Below are positions 5,281-49,599 of a DNA stretch of 64,000 nt, one piece after another (the first letter of the stretch is position 1; every line of letters starts with the position of its first letter). A program made the translations under genes and the position numbers. Below the pieces are notes generated by a model. It saw only the letters and a program-made list of their open reading frames with translations. It was not told the origin of the DNA and did no database searches. The stretch comes from Nageia nagi (lineage: Eukaryota; Plantae; Pinophyta): the NCBI GenBank assembly GCA_050084985.1, contig JBITNC010000001.1:205158001-205222000 (forward strand). The letters run 5' to 3'.

Positions 5281-5299
5281 TGGGAGTTTGGGGGACATC

Positions 5300-7322: not shown

Positions 7323-7326
7323 AAAA

Positions 7327-9567: not shown

Positions 9568-9569
<2 letters not shown>

Positions 9570-9602
<33 letters not shown>
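9570..9602. repeat. (TA)n microsatellite
   Basis: Direct reading. Confidence 0.95.
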
Positions 9603-9605
<3 letters not shown>

Positions 9606-23482: not shown

Positions 23483-25000
23483 CTACTAAATGTTATTGAA
23501 GATAACATAATACAACACAATATACTCCTAGGTCACTTTTGGATCCATGAAATGCAGTGTATTTTTCCACATTACATGGTTACATTAAGTACACTTATTT
23601 TGGGTTGCTACATTATATACCAATTGATGATGATCCTTTTTCACATGGTAACTATATTTGGATGTCCATTGAAGGAGTCACTCTCCCATCAACACATATG
23701 ATACCAACTAAAATAACATAGGCACCATCCAAGATCTTAATTTAGTTAGCTTCACCTTACCCAATACAACATGAAAATGATGAAGGAATGGGTCTTGCAT
23801 CCTCATCGCCATATTATAAGAAATATGAAAGATGGTTAATAAATAACCCAATTGGTAATGTGAGTGCATCCTCCTCATCCTTAAAATAAGAAAGCACATC
23901 CTTTTCATCTCCTAAGAAAAATACATGATAACCAAATAATCTAGGAGAATGAAGGTCTTGGGAGGAATGCTCTCATCATTTAGATACCTTACATGCAACC
24001 ACCAAATATTGCAAAATTCATGAAAGTGATGAAGTGATCAACCAATCAATTACTAATGTTATAGAGGACCTAAAGAGTACAAAATATGAATGATTGATAG
24101 GGGACACAAATATGTATTATGTTCAAGTTTATTTCTTCAACCTAGGAATAAGGGAATATGTAATGAATGATGTAATTTTTAGCATCCCTTCAACACATGA
24201 AGTAGGTCGCCCTTATCTCACCTATGATAATTGGATATTTTGTTCCTTTTGAGGTTCCACCTAACCATAACTTATTTTTTTATGTAGGCACAAATATCCT
24301 AATCTGCATCTCATTTTTATCTACATACTCAAAATCATTTGTTATAAGTTTGGATTTCCTATCATCTAGAATGCAAAGTGTCATAGATCAATACTTTTCT
24401 ATATGGTGCTAGGGAGGTCATGGTCTATGTCAATATGATTAAGGTAATCACTATATAATTGAGATACCATATCACATTGCTAGTAATTGAAGGGTTCTTG
24501 ACTACAATGATCACCCCAATAGATTTTATCCATGTGAATTGATTGATATGGAAGAAGCACATGTTGAGTACAATGATGTGGTCATAATCCCATAATATGT
24601 AGTGAATCAAGAAAATGATGTAAATTCAATGATTTAGATCCCAACACACTTATTTGATGAAGTTTTACATGTAGAGAAATATTTTTAATATCAATCAAAT
24701 GACTTTGATGATGAAGATGAATTTTTGCTACTCTAGGAAATATATACTATGATCCCCTTAAATGGTCCATATTTCTTACGATGATCGAGATGATTCCCTA
24801 TAGTTAGGATGATAGGTCCAATATATGAGTATGAGGATGATTATATTCTACACAAGAGCTATATTTCCCCCAATTGATTTCATTGGATAACCACAAAATT
24901 CCCCTCTTGAGATTCATTTTTGAAAATGAGAGGCACTTACCTCCTCCCAAGGTGAGAGTGGCTTTGTTGGTGCCACAACCTAGGCCTATCCTACATATGC
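23483..25000 (+). mobile_element. Tat-type Gypsy fragment (protease C-terminus and PR-RT spacer), paralogous to 51490-53020
   Basis: Colinear similarity. For example, ATATTTGGATGTCCATTGAAGGAGTCACTCTCCCAT occurs at ~23654 and ~51674, and GAGGATGATTATAT..ACACAAGAGCTAT at ~24833 and ~52864. Confidence 0.8.
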
Positions 25001-27401
25001 ATAATTTTCCCATACATTTATAATGATTTGTTAAAAATATATAATTAAATAATATTAAATTATAATGGAAAGAATTCATAGTTTCTATCCTATACATAGT
25101 ATTTTAAAGGCTACAAATATCACATGCAATTTCAACCAAATGCACATGATCTACACAAAGACATGTAATCTATACAAACATAGTTGGTTGTAGGCTGAAT
25201 GTAGGTAACATTAGAAATACACATGATCATCTAGAATTGCACATCATTCTCTCTCAAGGTAAGATCACTTATTTTTGTTAATACAAAAAGCATAACTAGG
25301 AATATAAATTGCAAATGCAAAATAATTTTTTACACTATTTTTTATTCTTATATACTTGGTTGAATTAAATTATTCTTAGATTACACTAAATATACTTAAT
25401 ATGTATTTAGGAAATAAAACATAAGATAAGGGGTGGGAATGATCATACATGTGCATGTTTGTTAACTTAAAATGAATATTGCTATCTTGATTCATATATG
25501 GGAATGTTTCAGTTTGGCTTAAAATGAATGTTAAAAGGAATCTCATTTTTTTGTTTTAATAAGATAGCTTTTCATATGCATTTAGTTAGGGTAAAAAAAT
25601 GAACAATGGTGGTGATTTGGAGGTCATGAAAACCCATTAATATCCTTAATATATTTCTTAGCTCAAGCATTAATCCATATTTCATCATTGGTAGGTTGGT
25701 TACCTTAGCAACTTAACACCAGGTAACCAAGTTTTATGATGCCCACTTGTCTGTGTTATTCATCCTAGTTATAACTTTCAATGCTAAATAGCATTGGGAT
25801 TTTCCTAGGTTAGCACTTATGTATTTTGATCTGGAACTTTATGCAACTATAGAAAATCCCTAAGTATAGGGGCTTTCATTAGTTCACCTATGTCAACTTT
25901 TTTAAGAAACATTTACCCTACCCCTTTAAACACTTGACTAGTGTGTACTTTAGGAAAAATAAAAGAGGTCATAAAATGAATTCATATCATACAGGTCAAA
26001 TAAATATAAATCAATTAGTGAAAATTTAATCTAGATATTAATAATTGATATATTTAAATAAAATGGTAGGCATAGAGGTTGCATTTTCATAATTATTTTA
26101 TCATAGTCTCACACAAAACATAATATAATCAAATGGTTTCTAGGATTTAGAGTTATTTACTTTAATTCTTTTTGTGTAATTAGTTTTATTAAATCTGACC
26201 ATATATTAAAGGAATAGTGATGGGGAAATGACTCCCTCTTTTCCCCCTTTAAACATTACCAAATCTAATCTACAGGTTAATATGGTGCAAATGAAAAGTC
26301 AAAAGGCTAGATAATCTAACCAAGGGAGTCCACAAAATGTGCATTCTCATCACTAATGTGATGAAGAATATAATGAAATTCTAGAATACCAATAGCATCA
26401 TGAAAATCCCCTCAAGATAAGGAGGAATAACTTGGATTAGAAACATTATATGATTCTCACCAAGATGACCATAGCATAGATGAAGTTTATTCTCATTTAG
26501 CTAGTATTCAAGGCCTCCTAGTTCTATCCTTAATATTTTGACTAGATACGTAGACTCAATCAAGTCTTCTCTATAATGGGATACTTTTCACAATTCCCTA
26601 GATACATATATTTTACAACGTAGAAGTAACTATGCTTTAACCTAACCCCTATGTGATGAGGATCCTCAGTCATAATCTATCATTGCAATTCTTCATATAC
26701 TTGAACATAAATAGAAATGTGAATGTGTACCTATTATGATTAATGATGAAAACCAAGGGTTTAATATAGAAGAAGGGTTGATTATCCACCCTCCATCATA
26801 CATGTTCTAGATATTCATATTGTACAAATCACGAACATGTGTATTTGCACATTATGAGTATTAATGATATTTCTCAGGAATGATAATTACCATATGATGA
26901 TCCATACTTTATGATCAAGTAAGTCACCCTAGATAATAACCTTTTTTATCCTAAGTTATAATAAAAATATCTCTTCCCATCATAAGCAATACAATAGTCA
27001 TTATCTAATAGGATTATTTGAGTATTCCCTCCATATATGGGACATTATGGGAAGACATCATGAGTGTCTTCCCATAATTCTTATCATCATTAGTAAATAC
27101 CCTTGCATAGAGTTAGAGAGTCTCTTCTTTTAGATAGGGGAGTCTCAGTGCATTCCCCTCGTATACCTAGAGAGGTCCCACCATGAAGACCTAAGCATCT
27201 ACCTAGGATTCCTTCACCCATATATAGAGTTTCTCATCATATCTTGATTGTTCATCATCATTAAGAGTGATCTCAATGTCTTATTAAAAAAAATGACTCA
27301 ATCACTTTCTTAGTCATTCTTCATCTAGAGAATAATATTTCCAATAAAGGTATCATCATGAGTTTCCTTAGAAAAGGGTTTCATGCCATTATTCACCTAT
27401 G

Positions 27402-27634
27402 TTTCAACATGTTACTTTGTAGGGATTATGGGATAATATCCTAGAACATGATTATAACTCCTATTAAGCTATTTTCAATTGAATTTTAGTGGATTTACGT
27501 AACATTCCTTAGCATTCATTTTTGTTCCTTCATGTAGCCTCCTTGAGCTCAATTTTAGTTCCTCATTAAGGTTCTACATATTATACTACAAATTTACTTA
27601 ATGAATCACATTGTTGTATTCTCAAATTATTTCA
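27402..27634 (+). mobile_element. 5' LTR (5'-truncated) of the split Copia element
   Basis: Colinear with the 3' half of LTR 49098-49527 (AATATCCTAGAACATGATTATAACTCCTATT...CTCAAATTATTTCA). Confidence 0.85.
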
Positions 27635-27637
27635 TAT

Positions 27638-27767: not shown

Positions 27768-28846
27768 ATGGATTCTAGAGTTAATTCTCTTCTCATACCA
27801 GAATTCAATTTAGAGGATTATGAATATTGGGCATTGAAAATGAAGCATTTGCTCATAGGTAAAGGAGTGTGGGACATTATTAATGATGACTATGTGGAGC
27901 TATATTGGGACACACTTCCTCAAGCTGATAGGCCTACTAAAAGAGTGGCCAAAAATAAAATATGTTTTGTAATCTATCATCTCTAATTAGCCTTGGACAA
28001 GAGAATGTTCCTAAGGATTGCTAGTTGCAATATGACCAAGGATGAATGGAAGGTATTAAAACATGGATTTAAAGGAAATGATCAAGTGAAGAAAGTGAAG
28101 CTTCATACTTTAAAAATAGAGTTTGATAATCTAAAGCAAAAATAGGAAGAGAAAGTTGGTGAGTATTTTGTAAGAGTGAAGACATGTTTCCAAATGATGG
28201 AGATACTTGGAGAGGAGGTAAAAAATCTAATTGTAGTGAAGAAAGTGTTAAGAACACTTATTACAAAATGGAGCCAAAAAACTATTATGTTTAAAGAGAA
28301 TAAAAATACGACAACTCTTAATATTGATCAACTTATTGGTTCCTTGATGTCTCATGAGGAAAGGCTTGCTCCACTTTCAAATGTTGGGAGTGTGGAAGAG
28401 AAGGATTCAATTCTAAAGAAGGTGACACTACTTCTAATGGTAAATGGAGAGCTTAAGGTAGAGAAAGAGGTAGATATTATAGAGGAAGAGGAAGACGAAG
28501 AGGAAGATGAAGAGGTAGGAGAGGTGGCTTCCCAGGTAGAGGAGGATTCCAAGGAAGAGGAAGGGAGGATTCTTCAATAGGTGAAAAGTGAGACAAATAA
28601 TTTTAATATTGTAATAAATATAGACACTATGAAAGGTAATGTAGATTGAAGGCTTCCAAAGAAGGAGACCAAAGTGCAAACTATGGTGACAAGTATGGAT
28701 CCTCCACCTTGTTCTTATGTTATGCCCATTAAGCCCAAAAGCTGGATAAGGCATGGATCCTTAACATGAGTTTCTTCAACCACATGAATAATAAGGGAGA
28801 TTTATTTTATACCATAGATGACTCATATAAGTCCAAGATCACACTT
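27768..28846 (+). pseudogene. Copia gag and start of protease (5' part of the split element)
   Basis: MDSRVNSLLIPEFNLEDYEYWALKMKHLLIGKGVWDII, a UBN2-like region (VKKVLRTL...LIGSLMSHEERL), an RGRG-rich tract, zinc knuckle CNKYRHYER*C, then NHM...DDSYKSKITL. Confidence 0.9.
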
Positions 28847-29252
28847 ATGAAATATTTTAAAGGGAAAATTGGAAAATCAAGGCTATAATTATAGATTTTC
28901 ACTTTTTGATTTGGCTAGTATAGTGCATGGTGGGTCCTGCCTTAGAGAAATTTTTTTATAAAAAAAATTATATTCTTGACCCATGTAGCTAACCTTTTAA
29001 CATGATTTCAAATATATTAGCCCTTTTTTCTAAACTTAATTTAGCTCATTCACCTTGAAATTATAAAAATAATAAATAATTCTACCTAAATAGTCACTTA
29101 TAGGTTAACAAATATATACATATCAAACTTCCCTATCCATATGATACCATGCCACCATATAGTGATATTGGAATCATATTTCTAAAATTGGATCAAAACC
29201 TATATCTGGTATAAATCTAAATTTGGGTTGGAACTTACATTGGGAAGTTGTA

Positions 29253-29730
29253 ACTAGGTTGGAAGCATTTCCTCTATAATCAAGTTATAAGCATTTCCTT
29301 TGCATCCAAGTTAGAAGCATTTCCCTTACAATTGGGTTAGAAACATTTTCTCTATAGTCTGGTTGGAAGCATTTCCTCTACAGCTAGGTTGAAAGCATTT
29401 GTTTTGTATCTATGTCAAAAGCATTTCCTCTATAGCTAGTTTAGAAGCATTTCCTTTACACTTGGCTCAAAAGCATTTCCTCTATAGCTAGGTTAGAAGA
29501 ATTTCCTCTACATTCATGTTAAAAGCATTTAGTATACATCCAAGTTGAAAGCATTTCATTTGCAATTGGGCCAGAAACATTTCCTCTACATCTAGGTAGG
29601 AAGCATTTTCTCTATAGCTGGGTAAGAAGCAATTCCTCAAGCTAGGTTAGAAGCATTTCCTTTATAGTTGGGTCAAAAGCATTTCCCTTGCATTCAGGTC
29701 AAAAGCATTTCCTTTACACCTAGGTTAGAA
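29253..29730. repeat. 26-bp tandem array, ~18 copies (CTAGGTTAGAAGCATTTCCTCTACAG)
   Basis: AAGCATTTCC recurs every 26 bp. Confidence 0.95.
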
Positions 29731-29904
29731 CATGCATCTATTCATAACCTACCTCCATTTGAAAAGCATTTTCTTGTAACTTGCATCCTGATAGGAAGAA
29801 ATTTCTATATCTGATTCAAATGAAATCTCACCCACTCATAAGAGTGATGCAAAACTTAGTGGTAATAGAGGTGTAATAGGATGCACTTATACAAAACCTA
29901 AAAG

Positions 29905-32900
29905 CATTTTGTTATATTTTAAACATTGAAGATAAATTGGGAGGCAAAATCAACTTGTCCACTAGTATGCAATATCTAAGAAATTTCTTAGACACCAATG
30001 AACTAATAGAACTTAATCTAAAAGAAAATTGATATACATGGTCCAAGAGGAGAATAGGGAGAGGTTTTATCTTGAGAATACTAGACTAGATGATGGCTTC
30101 CTAGGAATGGTTGGACCAGTACCAAAACTATGCCTTATCCTTTCTACTAAGGATTTCTTCTGATCATAGACCAATACTTCTTACAATGGAGAATATGCAA
30201 AATATAAAAGCTCCTTTCAAATTTTAAAACATGTGGATGTCACATAAAGACTTCAAGGATATGCTCTTTGGGTGGTGGAAAATTAAAATTCAAGGTATTG
30301 CTATGTACAAACTTACAAAGAAGCTTGATGAAGTGAGAAAAAATTTAAAAATTTGAAACAAGAAAGAGTTGAAGAATGTTCACTACATAAAAGCTTAGCT
30401 GAAAGAGAGAATGAAAGAGATCAAACATGAAATTCTTAGAATAGGTCACACAATAGATTTGGAAAAGAGGAAAGGTAGCTATTGGTGGCATTCTATAATA
30501 CCCTTACCCAAGAGGAACAAATGTGGAGACAAAAACCAAGAATTACATGGATTAAAGAAGAAGATTGAAACACTAAATTCTTCAAAGTTACCATAATGAG
30601 AAGAAAAAATTTCAATAAGATTGTTCAAATAAAAAAATAGGATGGTAGTGTCATAATTAAGGAGAAAGAGATAAAAAATGAAGCTGTCTAATTCTATGAA
30701 AAGCCTCTATTAATAAACTAGAAGGATAGTACACAAGCTATAAACAAAATCATTCAAAATATACTTAGTATCATAACTCATAAGAAAAATGAAGCACTAA
30801 AAAAGAAAATCACAAAAGAGAAGTGAAGAAACTTTCTTCCTAATGGAACCAAATAAATCCCTAGGACCTAATGGGTTTCTTGTAGGATTCTTTTAGAAGA
30901 ATTGGGAGATTTTAGAAAAGGAAATTTGATATGCTATTAAAGAATTCTTCACAAAGGGTAAATTGTTAAAATAGTGGAACAAGATGGATTTATTGGATTT
31001 ATTTTAGATAGACAAATAACAAATGGTATTATTCATATCCATGAAGTCCCACACTCAAACTATAATAAAAAATACCTACTATCATTTTCAAACTTGATAT
31101 GAAGAAGGCTTATGATAGGTTCAGTTAGAAATTTTTTAATAGAATGCTACAAGCCTTTGGATTTGGGAATATTTGGAGGAAGTGGATAACTGAATGTATT
31201 GTAACATAAATGTTCTTAGTTCTAGTTAATGGAGAAGTCATAAGCTATTTTAAATCATCAAGAGGTATAAGGAAAGGAGATTTGATATCACCTTATCTCT
31301 TCATTATTTTGGTAGAAGAATTGGGTAGAATGATTAAACATGCTAAGAAGGAACATATAATCAAAGGGGCAGTACTAGGCCCAAATTGTAGTCCAACCAC
31401 ACACCATCAATTTGTGGATGATACTATATTTATTAGAAAGGCTAAGAAAGGGGAGGTGATAAGGTTCAAAAGTATTCTTGAAATGTACAAAAAAGCTTCA
31501 CATCAAAGAACAAACCTCCAAAAAATAAAGATTTACTTCCTTAATTATTTTTATAGAGTTAAAAAAAATATAAGCAGAATATGGGGGTGTCTTGAAGGAT
31601 AATTCCTAACCAATTACTTAGGAATGATTTGTTTGTTGGGAGACTAAAAGCTTAATACTAGAATAGTCACATTTAGAAAAATTCAAAATAAACTCATAGT
31701 ATGGGAGGAAAAAACTCTTACCTATGCAGGGAGGCTTACCCTTATAAAAATAGTTCTCCAAAGTGTTCCCATATATTTCGCTATGATGTTCAAATTCCTA
31801 ATTACTATTTGTAACAAAATTGATTAAATTTGTTATATATTCCTTTGTACCAAATAGGAAAATAAAAGAAGCTTATCCTTGGTAATGTGGAAGACCATCT
31901 ATAGTGAAAAATATTTGGGAGGACTAGGTCTAGGGAAAATGAAGCAAGTTAGTCAAGGCTTGAGAGGTAAGCTTATTTAGCAAATTTCTTATGGTAATAA
32001 AAGTGAATGGGTCTAAATTATCATAGAAAAGTATATGATGGGATAATATGTCATTCTAAGAATCCAAAATCCCCCTTATGGCTCTACAATATGGAATGGT
32101 CTTACCTTAGCTAGATCAGAGATCATGAATCATATCATGTGGGATGCAAGAGATGGAAGTAATGTTTATATGTGGGAAGATACTTGGTTCAAGGTTAAGC
32201 CCCTAAACCAAATATCATAGTTTTAAAAAGGAGGTAGATGTACCCAAGATAATCAAGGACAAACTATTGATAATTATTATGATAATTCTCTAAACAAATG
32301 GTTTTTTCTCAAGCCTAAAGATGAAAAATGTAGAAGATAGCTACAAACCCTTGAACAAGAAATGAATACAACCAAAATTATCATGAATAATAACATAGGA
32401 AATTTTAAATGGGGTAAAAAAAGAAGGCAACTATATGGTTAAGAAAGCTATTAAGATCATGAATGAAGATGATTTGCAAGAACCAGGAAACCAAATTTGG
32501 AGGCCTAAAATTATACCAAAAATAGCCTTCTTCCTTTTTATAGTAGTTAGAAATAGATTGATGACTATTAATAATATGAAGAAAAGAGGGATCATAATGG
32601 TTAATAGATGTATCTTATGCCATCATAAGGAAGAAGATGTTAATCATCTTTTCATACACTATGAATATACTCAGAAGTTTTGGAGAAGAATGTGAAGGGA
32701 AGGGAATATAGCTGACCTTAAACCCCAAACCATAAGTAGTTTCATCCAATTCATGAGCTCCAATTCTAAGGATAAGGAAAATGAAAAACACATGTGTTAC
32801 TCTTATTGCCCATGTTTGGTGGTAAATATGGAAGCAACATAATACAAGGATCTTTGAGGGCAAATATAATAAAGTGGCATAGGTTTATAAAAGTAGTATT

Positions 32901-35350
32901 TATAAGGCTGATGAAAATATAATGCATGTTGGAGAACCTAAAATATGGTACCCTTTTTTAAAAAACTCTTTAAAATTAATGAAGTCTAACTTAGGAAATA
33001 GTTTTGTCTTGGGAAAGTGTAGGTAACTTCATAGCCAGACAAAGGAAGATTTGTTTATTATGAAGGCTAAAATTTTAAGGTACGATTGCAAGGTTGGTAT
33101 GAGTGACTATGAAATGATAGAGATAAGTTAGAAACATGTGGGAAGGTAATTCAATTTATTCACATGAGTTAGATATCATTTTGATGAGAAAATATGGCAT
33201 GATGGGGGAAGGCAACTTAATTCATCAAATGAATTAAATGCCACTATGATAGGAAAAGCATCCAAAACTTTATAGCCAATCCAAAATAAAGAAGAATCAA
33301 CATAAAGAAAACAAATAGGTACAAGATCCATAGAAAAATTGTAATGGGGGCTGCTCTAGTTTTTATTAAGCCCAACAATCCATAAAAGGCAAAAAAGGAC
33401 CTTAACATATGGCACCTGGTTTGCAAGGGGGACTTGAATACATTCATAGAAAATTGCAACGGGCCTAATAGGAGATTGGAAAACATGATAGTTCATAGTT
33501 GGAATAATGGGAAATGCATAATCCATGGCAAAGAGATCCACTTTATAGCTAATACCATAGCTCAGGCTACTAGTCTCCCAAATTAGGGGAAATAAATCAA
33601 ACACAACTCCAAGATGATTAAAGGGGAGGATATCAAGAAATTTGAAATAAGGGGTATCCATTTGCTACCTTATCAAACAATATACTATAGTAGCAGCCTA
33701 TCATAATCATGGTATAAACTATGTAAGGTAATCATGAAGTATATCACACCCGATGGTAGGCATACAAAGGTTTATATTCATCACATAATTCTCCTCTTTT
33801 GATTCAACTAGGAAAGAGTTAATTTGGAGGATTTTATGAAATTTTCCATGTTTATCTCAATGGGGAAGTGCAAAGCTAACCCCAATTTGATACCACTCCA
33901 TCAAATAGTAATGCTACTTATCTACAAACATGCCTTGTCCATGTAAGTCCCATAATAAACCCTTCACCACCAGATGGAAGCATTGGAAGAAGAAGGAAAT
34001 GATACTCAAATTGGCCATGAAGAGGAGGAAAAAAATGAATGCCCATTGTAGTTTCATCAATGAAGAAGGAATGAGGATGAGGATAACTAAATGCAAAATT
34101 CTTTTCAAGAAGAAATAACATACAATCAAGAGTATTGTTATACAAATATAATTCACACCAATAGCTCAGAGGCTAACACCATGAATCCTTGCACCTATCA
34201 AATTGAAGCCCTGAAACCCATAAGAAAGTGGACTCATGCAAAATATCATGCAAACTAGCCCAAAGGTAAGATTGACTCTTCTTTGAATAACCCTATTAAT
34301 ATATAAGATAGTCCTACTAAGTTAGAAGATCACTTCATTGGAAAAGTTTACACTAGAACCTAATCTAGAAAGAAGAATTTAAATAGGCCTAAGGTCAATG
34401 ACTCCTCATCTATATCCTAGGAGGTATCTAATTCTACCACTTATTTTGACTAAGAACCTCAACATCAACCACCCCCTCCATTTTATCCCCAACATGCCAT
34501 CCTTCTCTTTCTACCCATTCTCACCATCCCCTAATACCCAAGATTACCCTCTTCTTTTTCTTCCCTAATTCCATAGACATTATAGGAAATTCAAGATTCC
34601 TACTATTATATTTTCCTAGAACATCCACAATCACATGTTAGCCAAGGTAAATCACTATAAATGTATCCATATCACCTTGTTCAAATCCCTCCTAGTGTTT
34701 CAGCATATGCAAGGAGCATAAGATCAAAATAAGGAAATCATGTTTACTAGAGAAATGTGGAAGCTCATATATTGTAAATTCTACAAACATGGTTATAAGA
34801 AGTTGCAAAGGATAGTTTAAGTGGAACCTAATATGGAGGAGAGAAGATTAGCAACCTACTAGGAGTTCATATTCACTTCTATTCATGGAATTATAGCATA
34901 GTTTAATGAAGGAATTTACTTCGCACCAAAGCCCCTCAAGGCATGCAAACTAGGCGACAAGGAAAATCTCCATTGATAATGGTAAACACAAATCCTATTT
35001 TTTGGAAATGTTGTTTTGAAGACATGTTGCTCAATAGTGTAGAGACATATGGTTTTTCTTGCTATAAAAGGATACTAATCTTCAATATTCAAATGCAGTG
35101 CTTCATTTTGTTATGTACTTACATAGTTTTTGTTATAAGGTTTTTCTGTTATGTAAAGGATAAGTATTATTTAAATTCCTAGTCTATAGTTTATTTCCAT
35201 ATATGATCCCTTGTATATGATGGAGGAAAGTTATCCTATTAGGTTTTGCTTTTCTAACCTTAACTTTGTAAAAAGTTTCAAGAAACCTTTCAAAATTCTA
35301 CCTCTTTTTGATTAATATCAAATATAATCATCGATTTTAATAAAAAAAAA
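29905..35350 (+). mobile_element. 5'-truncated L1-clade LINE with a long 3' region and poly(A)
   Basis: EN tail (YTWSKRR..RILD..SDHRPI), RT (SLGPNGF, KLDMKKAYDR, RGIRKGDLISPYLF, HHQFVDDT) and zf-RVT (RCILCHHKEEDVNHLF). A-tail at 35342-35350. Degenerate TSD-like AAAACCTAAAA/ACAACCAAAAA. Confidence 0.9.
33344..34980 (+). pseudogene. Extra ORF in the L1 3' region, homologous to ORF 15440-17036
   Basis: MGAALVFIKP...IWHLVCKGDLNTFIENCNG...SWNNGKCIIHGKEIHF..TIAQATSLPN*G...WYKLCKVIMKYITPDGR...VNL...PLHQIVMLLIY, followed by acidic and Pro-rich tracts. Confidence 0.75.
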
Positions 35351-38282
35351 CAACCAAAAAAAGTGCAACAACCAACTCTTATCATAGAAGGTACACTCAA
35401 TTTAAATTTGTATTTTAAGTTGATTGTAAATTGTACTTTTTAATTAAGATAGTTTAAAATGCATTAAAAGTAGGAATATTTTGTTACAAAAAATACATCA
35501 GATGTCACTCCCCTTGAAGAAGACATATCCAATGATTAAATATTAGATGAATTTCAATTCGATATTACTCTCAGTGAACATGAACCTAAAAACAAGAGTG
35601 ATGATAATAAGAAAGGATTTCAAGAACACACAAGTAGTAAAAAGTCATCCAATAGAAAGAGAAAAAGAAAATGGAATGTAGGTAGAACATTTCAAGATGA
35701 ATGAGTTGGAACATATCCTTTAATAGAATTTGTAATGCCTAAAAATAGTTTGGAAGAACCTATGGAATGCAGATGTGTATGTTGCAATTGGAAAACAAAA
35801 AAAGAACATAGAATTCAACTAAAAAATGATAAAATTTAGAAACATTATGGGAAAAATACGAGTATGAAGAAGTAGATGGTAAGTGAATAAGGGTTATTAA
35901 GTAGAAAGATAAATTAAAATGCTTACATCTAAAATATCAAGAGATGTATGAAAATAAGATGAATAGAAGGAAGAAGATTTTTGAAAAAGGTGAAATAATA
36001 AATCAATATATGGATAAAGTAAATTAGGGAAATTTAATTGCTAATACTGTACAATTTTTTGTTGTATTTCAAATTTTAAAAAATGGTAGGCCTATTTTAG
36101 ATATTTCATTATATAAAGAATTTATCCATTTTGTTGGTATAAATTTATTTAAATTAACACAATACCATTTTTTTGAGAGTAATGAATGGGATATTTCAAA
36201 TTGTATTACGACGATTGAGATTCAAGATTTACGAGCAAAGGTAAGAGATGAAAAAAATATTTCATTATCCATATATGAAGTTGCTACTATTGATCATACT
36301 TCTTAGGTTTGATTACATGTCTACATCTTTCAAGAATCTAAATACATGAGAAAACCTCCCTTTCTATCAATCTAAAAAATATCTCAAAGTTCTAATGCTA
36401 AAAATTCATGCAATCTTGTTGTTAGTTGTCTAAAAAACATAGTAGGAATGGAAAATTATAAAATAGCTATGAAGTTGATATGTGTTTGGGCTGATAGCCC
36501 ATCTGTAATGTAGGAAAATAAAAATGGACTTTGTGTTAAGCTTTAAACAACATATTCTCCGTACATGATAGCAATTCATTGTATGGTACATAAAATGAAT
36601 CTTTCATACAAAATAGTTAACAAATTTGAAATTATTGCTAAGGTGGAGGAATTGGTTCATGATATTCATTCTTATTTTGTACATAGTTTAAAGAGGATTA
36701 TACAATTTCAATAATTTGTTGAGGGTATAATAGATGGTAAAAAAATGCTTAACAATATTGATATTAGATGTATTTCTTTGTATCTTCCCTTACTAAGAGT
36801 ATGCAAAGAATATATCTCATTATGTGGGTATGTGTGTGGAAATTGAATAAAATTTGATAAAGCAAAATATATATTATACATGTTAATATATAGTTAAATG
36901 TTACACACTTTATGTGGAATTCTACCAATGTTGAAGGAAATTCATAATGTAATGAAAATAGCTCAAACAAGATACATCTATATTGTTGATTTTGTAAGGG
37001 CAAGAAAACATACTTTTCTTGTTTTAGAAAACTTGTATATTTGCAAGGATAACTTTATGGGTGATAGTTTTGAGGCATGGCAATCTATCATTAATTTGAA
37101 ATATCCAAAAAGTTTCTTGAAATTTGATATTATGGGTAAGCTTGGTATAATTGTTCATGATAAATTGACCCCAATGCATTGTTATTATAGGAGAGATGAT
37201 ATTTATGTTTAAGGTTTAGAAGAAATGTCTATAACATCACAACTATTTGATCATCTTATTTTTTATGTAAGAAAAAAATTGCAAAAATTATTAGAAACAA
37301 TGTCAAGTGAAATAAGAGATCAATTTAGAAAGAATGATTTGGTTGAGTCAATAAGTATTGTGCACCCATATTTTTGGTCAACAAATAGTAGTTGCATGAG
37401 TTCAATATATAAAAAATATGTCAGTAATCTTATGAAACACTTTTTTTGATAGTTAAAATCAACAATGTTAAAATTCTAAGTATTTTGGACAAAAATAGTT
37501 GACAGATCAATCAAACCAATTCAATGTTACTATGTATGAACAATACAAGGAGTTGAGTGAACCAAATGAAAATGGCTTAATAGTATAATTATGGGGTAGA
37601 CTATATCTAAGTACAATAATGTAGATACAAATAAGTTAATATTTTTTCCTATATGAATTATGCTAGACTATGATTTTGGGATCTATTATAGATGAATGGT
37701 TTTTTAGTACTTTGGCTTATATCAAATCAAAAGCTCACAATAGATTGAATAAGAACTTGAAAATATGTTTAAGAATTTATACATCTAAATATGCTTTGGA
37801 AAATTTTCCATATGATAGAGTTATTTCTACATGATATTCAATTGCAAACAAGAGATGAACATCAAGGGCTAAATGTGCTAAAGATGCTAAAAATAGGGTA
37901 GTGGAAGTAATTCATAAAGATGAGTTTTACCAACAAATTATTGAAAAGGGATTAATTAATGTGCAAGAGAGAGATGAAGAGGAAGATGAAGAAAGTGTAG
38001 ATGTGTAATTTTCTTTTAGTTTTTTCAATCAAATCCATTGTTGGTATAATAATTTGCAATTTCATACTTTTTGAAAGGTTTAATGAAATTATTTGATATT
38101 TTTGAATCTCATATTTTCTATATGTAATGTGTTATTGAACTATTATTTGAATATACAAATGATTTTTTTTACTTTAATTTTCAAACTGTATAATATGATT
38201 AACATGTAGTAAACTATTAATGATATTTTTATTTTAATTTTTTTTTATAAGTTAGCATTTGTAAACTATATGTGATATGATT

Positions 38283-38582
38283 AGCATGTAGTTGCAATCA
38301 GACCAATTTTATAGATGGGCTAGATGCATGTTATTATAGCTAGGTGTTGCATCTGGCTTGACTATGATAACATGCATCCATCTAAGTTTCAATGACATGT
38401 AGTCAAAATGATTGCATGTTGTTGTAGTTAGATTAGATTCATGTTGTTATAGCTAGGTCAAATGCAACACTCAGATGTAATTACTTGCACCTAAATTGAC
38501 TACAACAACATGCATTAGAACCAACTGCATGTCATTGCATCTGGGTCAAGTGCAAGTAATTATAGCCAGACCAGGTGCATCT
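38283..38582. repeat. Degenerate ~26-bp array in mixed orientation, between the convergent genes
   Basis: TGCATGTTGTTGTAGTTAGATTAGA-type units and reverse units (GACTACAACAACATGCA). Core example TGCATCTGGGTCAAGTGCA. Confidence 0.8.
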
Positions 38583-38932
38583 CTTTTTTTTTTAAGTAGA
38601 AAACATAAATCATCATATGTCATACAATAAGTCAAAAAAATTATGAATTTAAAATAAATTTTATTAGGTACTAAAGAAAACTAATGCTAAAGAAAACTAT
38701 TACAAATTTACAATCAAGTAAACATGTTTTTAGTATTCTAATTAGATTGAACAACCATAAGTTTTAAAGGATAATAACACTAAAACCATTTACCAATTAC
38801 CATAATCCATGATTTACACACATGTCACATAATTCAAAATCATATAGGAAGTTATATACAAGTATTTTATATAAAATGGTAAGCCTCTCTCATTACTAGT
38901 TTGCCAAAATGATAATATTTAACTAAAACTAA

Positions 38933-41900
38933 AAATATCTCCCACTTCAAGCTAGTGGTTGTTGAGCTAAGGTTGATGCTTCTACATACTTTTGAGGTTC
39001 TTCTCTCTTAAATACATTTTTCTTTTTGTATATTGATAGCAAGTAAATCCATTTTTGAAAGAATATTATGCTCTTCCTTCATTGGATCAACATTATTGGA
39101 TTGCATAGATGAAGTACTCTCATCTTTCTTCTTCCATAGAATCTTGTAATCCATGTTGTGTTCTTGGATGATCAATTTTAAAAGTCAATTTTCCTATTGA
39201 ATTTGAGCAACATTTTTCTTTTGCTTTATCAATTCAAGCAAGAAGGCTTTTGCATTTTTGAAATAATGCTACATCACTTTCATTGTGTTCTTCAAGTTTT
39301 CATATCTTGCCTACATTCAAAATTAAAACTATTGGTATAACTTAAAAACATTATGAAAAATACCATGAAAATATAATTTTAATTCTAATTGTTAAAACTT
39401 ACATCAGCTCTCTACTTTTCTAAGTTTGATGTATTCAACAATTTCTGGTCATATGTCCATTTATCAAAATAAACTTGGGCTTCAACATTGATGTTTTCTA
39501 GCCTATCCAAAGCCATGTTTAGAATGTCATCAATTGTTCTCTTTTGAAACTTAAAACTTCCTTCCTTTGCATATTTCATCATAGAATTGATGAAAACTGG
39601 GTTATGTGCAATGATCTCATACAACTTGTCTATATGATTATGATTGTGATACCAAACATTTATCTCTTGGGTAAATATTTTTGCCCATTTCTCCCAAATA
39701 CTTAATTTTTCCAAATCTAGAATGAGAAATTAATTAAAATTTTTCAAGGTAGCCTCTCCCACATCAATTGAATTTTTGAAATCTAAAGCTTCATAGCTTA
39801 ATTCTTTGGTTGTCTTTTCCTAAGATGTCAAGGGTGTTTCTTATATTTTGGCTATCGTAGTGGTTTCAAGCTCTTTGGACACATGTTGCTCCCATCCAAT
39901 TACATCTTGCACCTCAAATATTAGTATACTAGTAAGAACAAGTTTGCCAAGATATTATGAAAATATATTATCTAATCTTGAATTTTCCAAGCAATCAATC
40001 TCTATATTGAGCAAACTATCATTTGGCACCTCAAGGCCAAAATTCATATGGGGAAAAGTAACATGGCTTTAAACTTTAAAAATCTTTTGATGACTTGTTC
40101 CTTATGCTTACATTGGTTGAGAGATACTTCCTCTCATTATTTATTGTTATGATGGTGGTGGTAGTGATAATAAAGATTTACCCCATCATAGAGGTATTTT
40201 CTAATAGGTTACTACATAAAGAATTGCAAATTTAAATCCACCAAATATTTAAAAAAATGAAAAATAAAAATAACTTAATTAATAAAAAATTTATACTAGG
40301 TGCTTGAGATGATGGTGTACTTGGAAAATCCTAATTATTCATTCCGTGAATGAATACCAATAGGGGTATATCATGAATCGTTATTTCAACAACCAAATTT
40401 GCATCAAAGAATTTTAATTATTTACTAAAATAATTCTAGTTCAACCACATATAATTTTAATATTTACCTTCCTTATCCTACATAGGTGTTAGATCCCTAT
40501 ACTATGGTTATTGTTGTTCCTTTACATTATTATTGTTATGTCAGCTAGTGTCCTTTCATTGTAGTGGCACCCCTTCAACTCCTATATATACTAAGGAGGT
40601 ATTATCATTTGGATTGTCTATTGTTATGTATTTGATGTAATGTAAAGGAGGTTGCCACCTCAAAGTGGCTTATTATTACTGATTTTATCTCTTATTCAAG
40701 GCATTGAGCTCTTTCTCTTGTGATTTTATGCTATTTTGGGAACTTGGTTCATAACATTTGGTATCAGAGTAGATGATTCTACTGTTTCATTGCTCAGAAC
40801 TAGTCATCATGGAATTTTTGCTACCAATTTATTTTTGCAAGGTTTTAGATTCTGAAATTTATTGGGTTTTTAGAAGACATGCCAAAGACATTTTAGTTCA
40901 AATTAAAGCTCCTAATTCACTATGTTTTTCAAGTTACACTTGGGGGAAGTTAGGGTTTGTGACTAGTCTCAAAAGCAGGTCAAAAATAGGTGTTCTAGCT
41001 AAAAAGTGTATATCTGAAGTATTACAGCTCCAAACTTTGTGAAACCTATTGTATTGGTTATCATATGGATTGAAGTTTATATGGTACAATTTTCAAGGTC
41101 TAGGAATAACAGGTGACTCATGGCACTTCGTACAAAGTTTGGTCTTCTAAAAAATCCAAAACTTAGCACATTTTGGGAAAGTTACAGCCAATTTCTCTTG
41201 GAATATCATAATTTGATGTAACCTATGGCATTGAAAATAAGACATCTAAGGCTACTACATGTAGAAATTTTAGAATCTAAAGGGATAAAATTTTATATTT
41301 ACATCAGTTGGAATTTTGGATAATAGAATAGTCTCCAAATCACGGTTTAAAAAGTAATACTCAGTCAAAATGCCATCGAAAAAAATTGCTACACCAACTA
41401 GACCTCCAGAGGGTTCATCCATGACTATAGAAAAAAGTGAAGACATATCCTTCTAAATATCCCAATTGGAAGAATTGGTAAAAGGGTGTGTAAAAAAGGG
41501 TGATTTGGAGGAATTAAAAGGGGATTTGACAAAAAGGATGGTAAGATCAATTGAAGAGTTGGCAAATAATATGGATCAAAATATGGAAAAGATTGTTCAA
41601 TTCATACAAAAACCAGAGGGAAAGATTCCTAAAGATGTTGATATGGCCCAAGGTTATTAGGAAAATAATGATATTATTTAAGGAGATAAACCCTTCATTA
41701 ATAAGCCTAATTCAGGAAGATATGCTTCTACTAATGGAAGTAATCAAGCATGGTTCTCAAGGGGAATGCAACTCCCCAAGATCAACATGAGGAAGTTTGA
41801 TGTAAAGGACCCCATGACTTGGATATTTCAAATGGAGCATTTTTTTGATCTACACCAAGTACCAACATCACAAAAAGTAACTATTACATCCTTATATCTA

Positions 41901-44275
41901 GAGCCTGAGTAGGTTGTATGGTACTAATGGCTTTGTGAATGTAAAAAGGGTTCTATTATATCTTGGTCCATTTTTATAGAGGAACTGACAGCCTACCATG
42001 AGGATGTTAAGAATAATTCCTTATTTACTCAATTGACAAATCTAAGGCAAAAAGGTTCAATGATGGAGCACATTCAACAATTTCAAAAGTTAAGTCTTAG
42101 AGTGAATGACATACAAGGTGATAGATTGTTGGATCTCCTTATGGGAACCTTAAAGGATAACATTCAACATGAGTTGCATCTATTTGAACCAACATCCTTA
42201 GATATGGCTTTTAGGATGGTAAGGAAGGTTGAAAGTAAAAATATGGCAATGGCTACTAAATGGTTTCCCTTGAACACTTATAAAGAAAATAATGTTCCTT
42301 CTTCTCACTTACCTAAACTAAGAAAATAATGTTCCTTCTTCTCACTTACCTAAACCTACAAAATTGACACCTCAACAAATGGATGAAAGATGAGCAAAGG
42401 GTCTATGCTTCAATTGTGATAGCAAGTATAGTAAAGGACATAAATGTGTGGAGAAGAAAATTATTCTACATAGAATGTGAAGAGGAAGAATAAGAAGAAG
42501 AAAAATCATCCACATTCAAAGAATTAGAAGAGATTACTACTGAAGAAAAGACTCCCACCATATCTTGTAATGCATTGGCTAGAATCACTACTCCTCAAAC
42601 TACACTTCTAGAACTCAACGAGGAAGGGAAAATTATATTGGAGCCAGAAGTAATCACTGAATCAAGAATCCATAAGTTAAGAAATCGATCAGTGTCAGAG
42701 TATCTCATTAAGTGGAAGAACCTACCTATTGAAGATTCCACATGGGAAGACGAGAATTTTCTACAGAAGCATCTAGAACTACTCAAACATTGAGGACAAC
42801 ATTTTTTTGAAGTAGAGGGGCATGTTAGATCCCTATACTATGGTTATTATTATTCCTTTACATTATTATTATTATGTCAGCTAGTGTCCTTTCATTATAG
42901 TGGCACCCCTTGGAATCCTATATATACTAAGGAGGTATTATTATTTGGATTATCTATTTTTGTGTATTTGATGTAATGTAAAGGAGGTTTCCCCCTCGAA
43001 GTGGTTTATTATTACTGATTTTATCTCTTATTCAAGGCATTGAGCTCTTTCTCTTGTGATTTTATGCTATTTTAGGAACTTGGTTCATAACAATAGGTTT
43101 CAATTTTGGCTGTTGAGGAGGAAGGGAAGATTCCTTGTTAGCTTCCTCTTCATCTATCTTAAAATCAATGACATGCATATGTCTTCTAGTCCTATGATGC
43201 ATTTGAGATTCAGTTCGAGAACTAGGAGCTTGAGATGCTATGTCAAATTCTCTTTAAACTTCATGTAGCCATTTTCCTCTCATAGTATCCTCCCTTCTAT
43301 CCTTCATAGCATCAACTTTTTTCTAAAATAAAATACATTTAATTAATACTATGAAAATAGATAAAACATTAAGGTTTATAAATTTTGTATTAAAATTGGA
43401 TGCAATGAACCTATAGTTAGATAAGAGATAGACCTATCTTCACAATCATTTGATGGTGTGATGTAGGTGTTGGTGTTTACTTCAAATAAAACAATGCCTC
43501 ATAGTATAGGCAAAGAATGAAATTATTTGTATTTACCTCACCCACACCTTTTGTTTTTACTCTATTCAACTCATTCTTTATCTTATATGAAATATAGGAT
43601 GACTAGTCAAATCGAGTCCCATTAAAGGAACATATAAGATAAGATACTCCCCAAAAAGGCATATCACCTATTTTTCTCTAAAGAACCAATATGAAAATAA
43701 AAAAATCCATGCAATCCCTAAAAAATTCATTCTTGATAGAAGACATCAGAAGATCCCTTTTCTTCTTGTGGGAAGTCACTACAAATTAAAAAACAAAATT
43801 GTGAATATTTAGAATGAATTAGTTGGATGAAAATTAAACTATAAAAACAAAATTGTATTCTAAAACAAAATTATACTTGTAAGAAAATATATATTCACAT
43901 TATAATTCTCATTAAGGTAGCATTTATCTTTATTGTTGATGAGTATACTAGAATGCACGAGCTCTGCTCCTTGAAATGGTAATCTGGTTAAACAAGCTAT
44001 GTATTCAGCGTTGAAGGAGAAAGTAAAATTTTCTTCTTTTATTCTATAGTCACTAAATTAGTGTTTGTATCATAGTTCTTAATAATATTATTCAATAGTG
44101 CATTCTTTGTAAGAATTTCAAGCATATAGATCAAACAATGTAAAGATGGGTTGTGTATCCATTCCTTTTCTAAATCATCCATTTATTCTAATAGAGGAAT
44201 TAAATCATTGGTTAGGTGATACTTGAAGTAAATACCCTTTCTCCTACCTCTAGATCCATTGTAGCTACTCACCAT
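38933..44275 (-). pseudogene. Spliced accessory gene of the DNA transposon: PMD/DUF1985-like N-terminus, coiled-coil C-terminus
   Basis: ATG at 44275 with a TATA at ~44390. Translation MVSSYNGSRGRRKG...LLNNIIKNYDTNTNLVTI..FSFNAEYIACLTRLPFQG | ...GTRFD*SSYISYKIKNEL. GT-AG introns of 85-98 bp at 43779-43876, ~43323-43410, 40212-40296 and 39311-39402. Includes ORF 39412..39714. Interrupted by the Gypsy at 40487-43092. Confidence 0.7.
40487..43092 (+). mobile_element. Complete non-autonomous chromovirus (Reina-like) LTR element: gag plus chromodomain only
   Basis: 270-bp LTRs at 40487-40756 and 42823-43092 (TG..CA, ~16 mismatches by eye). TSD ATAGG on both sides. PBS TGGTATCAGAG at 40759. PPT GAAGTAGAGGGG. 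gag LPKINMRKFD..., KGLCFNCDSKYSKGHKC. Chromodomain EYLIKWKNLPIEDSTWE. Confidence 0.95.
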
Positions 44276-44481
44276 TGCCTAATTATTCAATCTTATATTC
44301 CTATTAAGTTCCTAACCCTATTTCTACAGTTCCTTTCCTCCCTATAGAATGCTCTCTATTCAAATGAGCTGAATTAAACAATAGCTAGGGTATATATAGA
44401 GAGAAAATTAATTACACTATGGATTCAAATATATTTCATCAATGTATTAGCATATTGGAGGAAGTATTTAGTGCTTGGTGT

Positions 44482-44920
44482 AGTTGGTATAGATGCATTC
44501 TGAATGCTACCAGTTTGGATGCATTCAAAATGCAACCAGTCTAATTGCATTCAACATGTAGCCAATCTGAATGTATTTTGAATGTAATCAACCTAGATGC
44601 ATTCAAAATGCACTAAGTCTAGATGCATTTAGAATGCAACCAATGCAAATGCATTTTGAATGCATATAAATTGACTACATTATGAATACATCTGGACTGG
44701 TTGCATTCTAAATACATCTAAATTAGCTACATTTTGAATGCATCTACACTATCTACATTTAGAATGCATCTAGATTAGTTGCATGATGAATGCCACTAGA
44801 CTGGTTGTATTTTTAATGCATCCAAATTGTCTACATTGAGAATGCATCTAGATTGGATACATTATGAATGCATTTAAACCAACTACATTATGAATGCTTC
44901 CAGATCGACTACATTTTGAT
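44482..44920. repeat. 26-bp tandem array, ~16 copies, second half inverted
   Basis: Units TAGATGCATTCAGAATGCAACCAGTC run to ~44655, then the reverse complement GACTGGTTGCATTTTGAATGCATCTA. Confidence 0.9.
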
Positions 44921-45089
44921 TATAGTTTATACATTTGAACATGTGTTATGTTTTTTCCATGTATGAAATATCATCTCATCTATAATATTATGACATTTTT
45001 ATCAGTTTGAATAATAATTCCTAGCTAAAACCCTTCTATAAAAAATTGAATTATCTTTCATTTTAACATAATTTCTTATTTATTTTTAG

Positions 45090-45650
45090 GTAGTGCTTAG
45101 TGAAGAATGATCCCTATGAAGAGTATTTGCATCTTTTCAACCCATTCAAGGATAGAGTTTCAAATAATGATAAAGATTATTTTAAAACACTATCTAGAAT
45201 AGGAAGAAATTATCCATAGATAAAATATATTAGAGGTTTATTACAATTTCAATTAGATATGGTCATTAACAAGTTGGCAATAATTTTATGGCTTTATTTT
45301 AAGTCAATCATTTTTCATCATTTTAAGTTTTACATATATAATTATTTTTACTTAATTAATTTGAAGGAAAGTATGGGCAACTTTTATTTTAAAACTCTAT
45401 TCTTGAACATTTTCCAATGCTAGTTCATTCTTCACTTCCATGCAGGTGTGGAGCATATCTTCCCCTATGCCCTATGATTATAATAACCTAGAGGAGACAT
45501 CTCCCATGGTGGAAACAACTACAATGAAAAGTCATTATAGTTGCAGAGGATCCCAATCCTATTCTAGCTAAAGGTTGAATATCATATTCTATGGGTGAAG
45601 GAGATATTGTGGTTTCCAATCATATTTGTAATATTCAATCCTACTAAGCT
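45090..45650 (+). pseudogene. Possible third spliced gene of the DNA transposon, function unknown
   Basis: Acceptor TTTTTAG at ~45089, then CLVKNDPYEEYLHLFNPFKDRVSNNDKDYFKTLSRIGRNYP*IKYIRGLLQFQLDM. An AT-rich intron-like stretch at ~45262-45366 follows, then a further weakly open frame. Confidence 0.35.
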
Positions 45651-45777
45651 TAATTTTTGATCAAGTTGTTAGATTTCCACTTCTCCCTTGCACCTATATC
45701 TCAGGAAGTTTGAGCACTACCAGGAGACATCATCCATGGTGTAAAGACTACTTTGCACTCAAATTTTATTCATTAAA

Positions 45778-45802
45778 TGTGTGTGTGTGTGTGTGTGTGT
45801 GT
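45778..45802. repeat. (TG)n microsatellite
   Basis: Direct reading. Confidence 0.95.
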
Positions 45803-46046
45803 ATAATTTTTTTTTATACTAAATGGTTTATGCTTTCAAAAATTTACTATCAACTATGATTTTTAAAACTAAAACATTTTTGTCAACTTTTTACATCTAT
45901 TTTCCAAAACTGTTCAAAAGTCACCTATTAATTTACATTATTTTTGAAAACCCACCTTCAATTTGAAACATGTTTTGTCTATGTTTTCCTAGAATTTATA
46001 TTTCCATTTTAGATGAAGGTTCTTAAAATTTTCTTTGATCACACTT

Positions 46047-49000
46047 GGAGATGATAAAGACATTCAAGTTGAAGGCATGGGATCTATTGAGGTATCTACA
46101 AATGAAGGTAACAAAATGATTAATGATGTGTATTGCATTCCAAATCTAAAGCATAATTTGTTGAGTGTGGGGTAAATAATGGAGAAGAATTACAAACTTA
46201 TGTTTGAGGATAGAAAATGTATTATTTTTTATAAGAACAAAGGGCATAAACATGTCACTACTATTCCCATGATAAGGAATAGATTATTTCCTCTTAGATT
46301 TGGTTATCAAAGCTCTAATTTTTCTTATGTTGCTATTGATGATAAGAGTTAGCTTTGGCATTTGAGCTATGGGAATCTAAATATGACTTTGGCATTTGAG
46401 CTATGGGCATCTAAATTTTGAAATTTTAAGAATCTTAATTTCTAGTGAGATGGTATATGGGCTTCCAAACGTTAAAGAATATAAAGTGTTGTGTATTGAT
46501 TATGCTATGGGAAAGCATTCAAGATCAATCTTCCCAAAAGGTCAAGTATGGAGATCCTCCTAACCCATCCAATTGGTGCATAATGATATATGTGGGATAA
46601 TGCAAACTCTAATTATTAGTAAAAACTTCTATTTTCTTACCTTCATTGATAATTACTCAATAATTTGTTGGATATACTTTCTTAAAACTAAGGATGACAT
46701 TTTTTCATAATTTAAGGAGTTCAAGAATAATGTGGAAAAACAAAGTGGCTATTATTTTAAATATTTGAGAATAGATAGAGGGGGGGAGTTTTATAGTAAT
46801 GAATTTTTGTAATATTGTAAATATTATGGAGTGAGAAGGTAACTCACTATTGCCTACACTCCATAATAAAATGGTGTGGCTGAATGTAAGAATAGAACCT
46901 TGGCTAATATGGTAAGAAGCATGATCCAAACTAAAGGTCTATGCAATATTTATTAGGCTAAAGCTATTAGGATAGATATGTATATTTTAAATAGAAGTTC
47001 AACATCTAGTTTGGATGGCATAACACCCTTTGAGGCATGGTATGATAAAAGGCCAAATATGAATCATTTTAAAGTGTTTGGTTGCTTGGGTTATGTGCAT
47101 GTTCCAATAGAGCATAGAAAAAAATTAGATTAAAAGAGTGAACCTTGTATATTTATTAGTTACTATGAATTAAGTAAAGCATATATGTTATACAATCCCA
47201 AAATATACAAAGTTGTTATTAAAAGAGATGCTATTTTTTATGAAGGGAGAGCATGGGATCATAAAACATAACTTGTTGAAGATGGATCCTTTTATGAAAA
47301 CTCTTCTAATATATAATATAATATTTAGCCTATCCAACAAAATGTGTAACCCAAAGCATTAAATATTCCACAAAATACCACACAAGTGCAGCCCAAAGAT
47401 GTTCCAAGTGATGGTTATACTTATCCAAGAAAGAATGGTAAAGTAAGTGGTAATAGAACACTTGCATATCATCCTCCTTCTCAAATGTTAGATCAAAGTT
47501 TTTTTAAAGAGAGTAACTAAAGGAAAATAAAAATAATCAGATCAAGTAATTAAGAGGCTTGAAAATCTCCATTTGTATAGTGATGATTTGTATGGTAAAC
47601 CCAAGGGTGAATTTGATAGTTTTGCTTTGGTGGCTAGTGTTGATTTAGAGCCTTCTTTTTATGAACTAATTATGTTTGGATGAAGGCCATGGAAGAGGAG
47701 ATACACTCCATTGAAAAGAATGATACATGGGAGCTAGTTGAGCTTCCAAAAGGGAAAAAGGTTGTAGGATCTAAATGGATCTATAAAATCAAGTTTAATG
47801 TTGATGGTACCATTGAGGGGCATAAGGCTAGACTTGTGGCCAAAGGATTCACTCAAAGATACAACATAGACTATGAAGAGACATTTGCTCCTATTGCTAG
47901 ATAAGAAATAATTTGAATGGTTCTCTCCATTGCATCTCATAAAGGTTGGAAGGTATACCACTTGGATGTCAAGAGTTTATTCTTTAATGAATACCTTGAT
48001 GAAGAGGTATTTATTGCTTAGCCCCAAGGGGTTCATAGTCATGGATATATGGGTATTTCCAAAATTCTAATTTCACAAAAGAGCAAAATTAAACCAAATC
48101 TATACTATACACATGATGGTACTGATATTTTATTGATTTTCTTTTATGTTGATGATCTTATTTACATATGTAGTAATTCTATAATGAATGATGCTTTTTA
48201 GAACTCTATGATGCAAGAATTTGAAATGGATATTGGTATTATAAAATATTTTCTTGGTTTAGAGGTATATCAAGATAATAGTAAAATTTTTTATTTCTTA
48301 AACCAAGTATGCTAATGATTTGTTGCATAAGTTTATCATAGATGATTGTACAATTATTGTCACTCCTATAGGTCATGGAGAATACTTAACCAAAGATGAT
48401 GGAGCTATTGAAGCTGAATTGCACACTTATAGAAGCATAGTTGGGAGTTTAATATTCCTAACAAAATCAAGGCTTAATATTTATCATTTTATTTTATTTG
48501 TATCTAGGTACATGATTGCTCGTTCAAAGATTCATTTAAAGGAAACCAAGAGAATTATTAGATATGTCAAATAAACATAAGATTTTAGCATTCATTACCT
48601 ACAAAAAGAAGATTTAAAACTTGTTGAATATAGTGATAGTGAGTGGGATAATAATATTGATGATATAAAATCTACTTCTAGAAATTATTTTAGCCTTTGT
48701 ATAGGTCTTATTACATGGTCTTATAGAAAACACACTACAATTGCTCTATCCTCCAATGAAGCTAAATACATCACCATCATTAGTACTAGTGCAATCCTTG
48801 TGGATGTGAAAAGTTCTTGAGGAGATTAGAGAGAAAAAAATTTGCTTCAAACACCTTGTATTGTGATAACCAGAGTGCTATCTAGTTGGTAAAGAATCCT
48901 ATGCATCACTTCATATATAAACATTTTGATATGAAATACTCTTTCATATGGGATATGGTTGAGAAGAAAGTTGTTGAATTCTATTATTGCAAGAGTGAGG

Positions 49001-49527: not shown

Positions 49528-49599
49528 TCCTTATCACCAACCTATCATTGTGAGGGAACTTAAATTTATCTATTATTTTATTATAAAATATATGATTGG

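Follow-up and report, generated by a model that had tools for sequence, protein, structure and literature searches.

The hAT elements are textbook one-gene transposons that leave an 8-bp footprint, and the VANDAL elements of Arabidopsis, which belong to the Mutator-like elements (MULEs) without terminal inverted repeats (TIRs), have a multi-gene, array-bearing design that is thought to serve silencing evasion. The element described here occupies positions 28847–46036 of a 64,000-nucleotide stretch of the Nageia nagi genome (contig JBITNC010000001.1; hereafter, the window), where a hAT transposase gene, a second gene that runs convergently to it, and three arrays lie between one pair of ends. 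With the canonical plant hAT elements (Ac, Tam3, Tip100, and the grapevine Hatvine), this element has in common the hAT blocks (the Asp block, DGAS, HC..H..NL, RW.S, and a C-terminal dimerisation-like end), a short TIR, subterminal repeats, a cut-and-paste footprint compatible with 8 bp and, if so read, TA or CA ends. It differs from them in its second, convergent spliced gene, its three long 26-bp arrays, its very AT-rich and degenerate TIR, its apparent 10-bp repeat, and its size of ~9 kb as compared with 3–5.5 kb. With VANDAL and other non-TIR MULEs, it shares the presence of several genes, weak TIRs, internal motif arrays, a repeat that at face value resembles one of 9–11 bp, and a possible anti-silencing accessory gene, a role that is putative in the window element. 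This likeness is one of layout only: the transposase is of hAT type rather than MURA/MULE type, and Pfam searches of the open reading frame (ORF) pieces of the insert returned no signature of a MULE transposase (MURA; MULE domain, SWIM/FAR1) or of Ulp1.

The best explanation of the locus, to which we assign a probability of roughly 0.7, is that the insert is a complete, long-dead copy of ~9.2 kb of a two-gene hAT element and that its 10-bp repeat is most likely an 8-bp hAT footprint extended by two chance matches. A first-pass annotation of this DNA had placed a hAT-like transposase, a convergent second gene, and related arrays in one large DNA transposon, and all of these were recovered. The same annotation had proposed, from the 10-bp target-site duplication (TSD) and the weak TIRs, a distinct and possibly undescribed MULE-like lineage. 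What the data point to is an unusual two-gene hAT family; a TIR-less, MULE-like lineage making 10-bp duplications is not supported, as it would be drawn from one locus only, a TIR is present, the 8-bp fit is available, and the MULE signature is absent. The features of the locus are as follows.

28837–28846, no strand: left direct repeat GATCACACTT, the target-site duplication (exact word; empty site in Copia relatives).
28838–28845, no strand: candidate canonical hAT TSD ATCACACT, the central 8 bases of the left 10-mer.
28847–29251, plus strand: 5′ terminal region, which opens with a short degenerate TIR beginning at 28846 or 28847; ~76% identical to a second copy, L001, across the 5′ arm.
29252–29740, plus strand: array A, ~18 units of 26 bp (AGCTAGGTTAGAAGCATTTCCTCTAC); L001 has an array of a different unit at the matching place.
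29933–35347, plus strand: 5′-truncated L1 long interspersed nuclear element (LINE) with RVT_1, zf-RVT, and an A-rich tail at ~35337–35347; boundaries good to ~10 bp; missing from L001.
35857–37831, plus strand: remnant of the hAT-type transposase gene, with its core at ~35995–37100 in one frame.
37667–37831, plus strand: C-terminal, hAT-dimerisation-like piece of the transposase, in a frame that differs from that of the core.
38087–38834, no strand: palindromic stretch between the convergent genes, including a TGCA-rich middle array at ~38290–38590 (self-comparison).
38900–40481, minus strand: 3′ part of the accessory gene remnant; its largest exon (~39415–39810) has an in-frame stop inside.
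40487–43092, plus strand: long terminal repeat (LTR) element, an internally deleted chromovirus with TG...CA ends (identified by LTRs and TSD).
43098–44278, minus strand: 5′ part of the accessory gene remnant; pieces 44042–44182 and 43863–44057 are PMD-like by eye only.
44479–44920, no strand: arrays B and C, ~17 units of 26 bp (TGCA...TRCATT...GAA), divided between two blocks of opposite orientation.
44921–46036, plus strand: 3′ terminal region, which contains (TG)12 at 45778–45802 and, in its last 14–16 nt, the 3′ TIR; the region recurs in runs X1 and X2 as far as the boundary. Its last base is 46036, or 46037 in the case of an 8-bp TSD.
46037–46046, no strand: right direct repeat GATCACACTT (exact word; empty site).

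The boundaries of the insert are defined by the direct repeat and by the interrupted Copia element around it. As an exact word, GATCACACTT occurs twice in the window (28837–28846 and 46037–46046; expected for the word, 0.08), and the two copies enclose 17,190 bp within the Copia pol domain. The bases beyond both copies mismatch (A vs T on the left, A vs G on the right), which limits the repeat to exactly 10 bp. A repeated 10-mer in 64 kb is unremarkable per se, and its meaning comes from its position. The left flank translates as ...DDSYKSKITL and the right flank as ITLGDDKDIQVEGMG... (longer read, ITLGDDKDIQVEGMGSIEV...), and the 10-mer stands in the same codon phase to both. In the right Copia piece, Pfam detects Pol_BBD, the match starting at profile position 29 (E = 1.7e-11), and Copia gag (DUF4219), gag_pre-integrs, and RVT_2 are found by Pfam around the insertion site.

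The empty site was observed in two public runs, X1 and X2, that were aligned to window positions 43100–46600. The sequence ...GATGACTCCTACAAGTCCAA, which has two differences from the left flank of the window, ...GATGACTCATATAAGTCCAA, stands immediately before 46037 in 7 contigs of X1 and 45 contigs of X2. These contigs join the Copia left flank directly to 46037; uninterrupted Copia relatives thus hold the 10-mer once, as an empty site should. Both the duplication around 17,190 bp inside Copia and the restoration of the Copia frame upon excision, as the first-pass annotation had described them, are therefore confirmed. A Helitron was considered and rejected, as a TSD is present.

A second copy, L001, was obtained from a metagenome scan (contig Ga0068629_1000790, 9,906 bp). 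Its positions 2588–3057 correspond to window 28845–29368, 3541–3682 to 29809–29949, and 3653–5096 to 35348–36826 (74% identity), and the homology starts exactly at the proposed 5′ end of the window element. In the ~76% identical 5′ arm, 10 consecutive nt within the block TGCATGGTGG.TCC.GCCTTA are the same in both copies. The array of L001 (2990–3500) is placed like array A of the window but is built from the unit GGTTGGAACCTCC... instead of GGTTAGAAGCATTTCC...; the array motif turns over while its position is kept, which would fit a conjectured fast co-evolution. The L1 is absent from L001. As L001 keeps the 5′ terminus, the 5′ arm, the array, and the transposase in order, these parts belong to one element.

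This colinearity bears on the notion that the insert is a composite, in which a non-autonomous MULE or other shell with a 10-bp TSD received an ordinary hAT that carried its own 8-bp TSD and may or may not have included the second gene. In its favour, MULEs typically leave footprints of 10 bp, the arrays are set back from the ends by 400 bp and 1.1 kb, and the comparison with the second copy covers the 5′ side. However, L001 matches the window element in 5′ terminus, arm, array position, and transposase and in their order and spacing, a scan for inner 8–10-bp direct repeats beside inverted ends gave nothing better than the outer pair, and the searched ORF pieces are free of the MULE protein signature. 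The first-pass annotation had named an ordinary hAT nested in another element as a finding that would overturn its reading; on the 5′ side, the colinear second copy and the lack of a better inner pair speak against such nesting, and we consider a composite very unlikely.

Even less likely, to the point of being hardly credible, is the insertion of a foreign block by a LINE or by repair with a chance 10-bp duplication. LINE target-primed insertions have variable duplications of 7–20 bp, and an L1 is present inside the element. Against this origin, poly(A) is found at neither end, the L1 is internal and missing from L001, homology to L001 sets in at precisely the first base of the element, and the ends form a short TIR.

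The transposase is a divergent hAT of the Buster/ZNF862-like kind, in agreement with the ZNF862/hAT-like, plus-strand transposase of the first-pass annotation. About ten in-frame stops (36025–37210) interrupt its core frame and were read through as X for alignment to the 490-aa protein P0013. By tblastn, P0013 aligns to window 36049–37080 in a single frame with 27% identity (E = 6.6e-38), and the read-through alignment spans P0013 residues 93–457 with the hAT blocks visible (P0013/window: SLDEAT/SIYEVA, CDGASV/ADSPSV, HCTGHRTNL/HCMVHKMNL, and TRWISL/IRCISL). The position of the first catalytic Asp is occupied by Tyr in the window. Judged by these stops, the C-terminal frame shift, and the lost catalytic Asp, the transposase gene is dead. 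A 92-aa piece (36028–36303) has 14 relatives among 1.84 billion representatives searched with HMMER (best E = 2.8e-21, 67% identity), all of them from unannotated assemblies.

The kinship with the Buster/ZBED5/ZNF862/EPM2AIP1-type proteins (the DUF4371 group) was further seen in the ESM Atlas, where the clusters nearest to P0013 are EPM2AIP1, ZNF862-like, ZBED5-like, and DUF4371 hAT families (0.95; 192–197 shared features), and P0013 shows a sub-threshold match to the zinc finger zf-C17orf113 (E = 0.007). The top Foldseek match in the PDB for the P0013 model, which is a poor one, is the Hermes transposase (8edg_A, E = 6e-4), which is joined in the first 14 ranks by a further four Hermes entries. 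The window element differs from the DUF4371 group in that P0013 and the window pieces have no significant DUF4371 or Dimer_Tnp_hAT match and in that its transposase gene, which is not a host gene, lies in a mobile element that has ends and a TSD. A word-based protein search with P0013 returned P0013 itself only, and PDB sequence searches gave no match. Scans of viral and of bacterial and archaeal contigs with P0001 and the conserved 5′ block TGCATGGTGGRTCCYGCCTTA yielded no true match; the sole match to P0001, L002 (CAZUEQ010000010.1, a Gammaproteobacteria metagenome-assembled genome), was rejected as spurious, as it comprises 17 residues and other protein similarity and DNA similarity are nil.

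The ends of the element carry a short TIR. The 5′ end, ATGAAATATTTTAA, and the 3′ end in reverse complement, AAAGAAAATTTTAA, match at 10 of 14 positions (chance 0.0013), and the 5′ end of L001 matches the inverted 3′ end of the window at 11 of 16 (chance 0.0011). The earlier statement that TIRs are almost lacking thus needs correction. Long TIRs were not found. The TIR register is as symmetric for ends at 28847 and 46036, which leave a 10-bp TSD, as it is for ends at 28846 and 46037, which leave the 8-bp TSD ATCACACT. With the outer base included, the termini read TATGA..., TAGCA... (L001), and CAAAG..., of which only CAAAG fully fits YA(R)NG, the usual start of hAT TIRs; if the TSD is 8 bp, all three open with TA or CA, with L001 likewise having a T at that place. 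The ends of hAT elements usually begin with TA or CA, and the ends of Ac differ at the outermost base. The standard hAT duplication length is 8 bp. In grapevine, every hAT family with a scorable TSD has one of 8 bp, and MULEs have 9 bp (PMC2528002).

The insertion targets of the two copies (window 28837–28846 and L001 2580–2589) hold a near-identical 8-mer in opposite orientation. The window octamer ATCACACT and L001 AATGTGAT (reverse complement ATCACATT) agree at seven of eight positions (chance 0.0012), and the outer two positions differ. The shared 8-mer may reflect a sequence preference of the transposase.

Together, these data allow the 8-bp footprint to be weighed against a distinct lineage with a hAT fold that makes true 10-bp, MULE-like duplications and has near-absent TIRs and a two-gene, array-bearing layout. 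The exactness of the 10-bp repeat, with mismatches directly outside, and the 10/14 symmetry of the TIR for ends at 28847 and 46036 are as such a lineage would have them, and so are the divergence of the transposase (no Pfam hAT match, and 14 relatives only for the 92-aa piece) and the second gene and arrays, which are unusual for a hAT. However, both ends are readable in one copy only, that of the window, and an 8-bp TSD would mimic an exact 10-mer in 12.6% of cases at the base composition of the window. Moreover, the base outside the end is T at both known 5′ ends, giving hAT-like YA termini, the target similarity is restricted to the central 8 bases, the 92-aa query is decayed, so that its few matches are uninformative, and 8 bp is the standard hAT duplication, as seen in every scorable grapevine family. 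We therefore regard an 8-bp footprint as probable, and a true 10-bp footprint, like the lineage that would make it, as improbable. A more specific version is also doubtful: a hAT lineage that is missed by the Pfam hAT models and combines true 10-bp duplications with an ATCACAYT-core target preference, a second gene, and copy-variable array motifs would represent a VANDAL-like strategy that evolved in another superfamily.

Several observations weigh against a two-gene hAT with an 8-bp footprint. Taken at face value, the repeat measures 10 bp, and the TIR register suits a 10-bp TSD as well as an 8-bp one. The choice of 8 bp rests on the prior, on one extra base of L001, and on the YA pattern, with a single two-ended copy. 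As to the transposase, Pfam DUF4371 and Dimer_Tnp_hAT were not found in ten window pieces, a result compatible with hAT membership as these are short and decayed, nor up to E = 10 in P0013, P0008, P0014, and P0003, and the AlphaFold model of P0013 has a pLDDT (predicted local distance difference test) of 47, which makes the Hermes match weak.

The second gene runs convergently on the minus strand, as the first-pass annotation had claimed, and is present as a remnant that was split by the chromovirus insertion. It was searched exon by exon. The piece 39415–39729 has two relatives, each a protein fragment, with 60–61% identity in other assemblies, one of which carries the exon on to 39810, across the stop of the window copy. 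Pfam PMD (PF10536) and DUF1985 were not found in 12 minus-strand pieces or in P0016 and P0017, the exons being searched singly; the homologue search with the PMD-like piece was empty, and the ESM Atlas was uninformative for the accessory exon. PMD is associated with MULE transposases (PMC12973397). No description of a two-gene hAT was found in the literature searched. The third gene that had been considered possible was not borne out, as the remaining ORF pieces of the insert have no Pfam family match; across ~32 ORF pieces of the insert, Pfam returned nothing usable.

The locus arose by a cut-and-paste type of insertion, marked by a staggered-cut footprint, of the element into pol of an old Copia. 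From 5′ to 3′, the inserted element comprised the degenerate TIR, the conserved 5′ arm, a 26-bp array, the plus-strand transposase gene, the palindromic middle array, the convergent spliced accessory gene on the minus strand, the pair of 26-bp arrays, and the 3′ arm. On the 8-bp reading, the duplication would be the octamer ATCACACT, with the first T and the last G of the element coinciding with the next target bases, such that the ends read 5′-TA... and ...TG-3′. The transposase is predicted to have bound the short TIR and perhaps also the subterminal and intergenic 26-bp arrays. Because each array adjoins one gene, upstream or downstream, the arrays may be regulatory, or they may be sites for the second protein, as in the VANDAL/VANC system. 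The 5′-truncated L1 and the internally deleted chromovirus were inserted later, followed by decay through stops, the frame shift, and the loss of the catalytic Asp.

Without its two nested inserts, the host element measures ~9.2 kb, in line with the ~9 kb given before for the element without the L1 and the chromovirus. The chromovirus has LTRs of 280 bp (40487–40766 and 42823–43102) that are 93% identical by self-comparison and a 5-bp TSD, ATAGG (40482–40486 and 43093–43097). It contains only a gag-like ORF and a chromodomain (Pfam E = 1.9e-10) and is probably a non-autonomous derivative.

Further observations concern the 3′ arm and the Copia elements. A bin of 117 bp in the 3′ arm (45089–45205) is several-fold deeper than its neighbours in X1 and X2 (in X2, 1264 vs 200–350); it may represent a conserved block or else a small element present in many copies. 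A 1.6-kb direct repeat with 75% identity (23494–25071 and 51513–53099) probably represents the LTRs of the host Copia; after removal of the hAT, ~9 kb is left between these putative LTRs, which makes more insertions likely. A 240-bp direct repeat with 83% identity (27397–27635 and 49289–49528) lies within Copia on either side of the coding region. In L001, positions 5100–9906 show that the hAT copy is interrupted by a fairly intact, reverse-oriented Copia-type element (integrase, RVT_2, and RNase H ORFs of 100–160 aa), which is distantly related to the window Copia (57–62% DNA identity). The possibility that the flank of L001 is the same Copia site as in the window was rejected, as tblastx found nothing.

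A hAT with true 10-bp duplications, if real, would bear on how transposase geometry sets the stagger of the target cut, but it would stem from one locus for which an ordinary explanation exists. The value of the window copy lies in limits that are defined at single-base resolution and in a 5′ end that an unrelated copy confirms. If a plant hAT with a second spliced gene and three arrays is indeed what this copy represents, multi-gene, array-bearing designs would extend beyond Mutator and CACTA elements.

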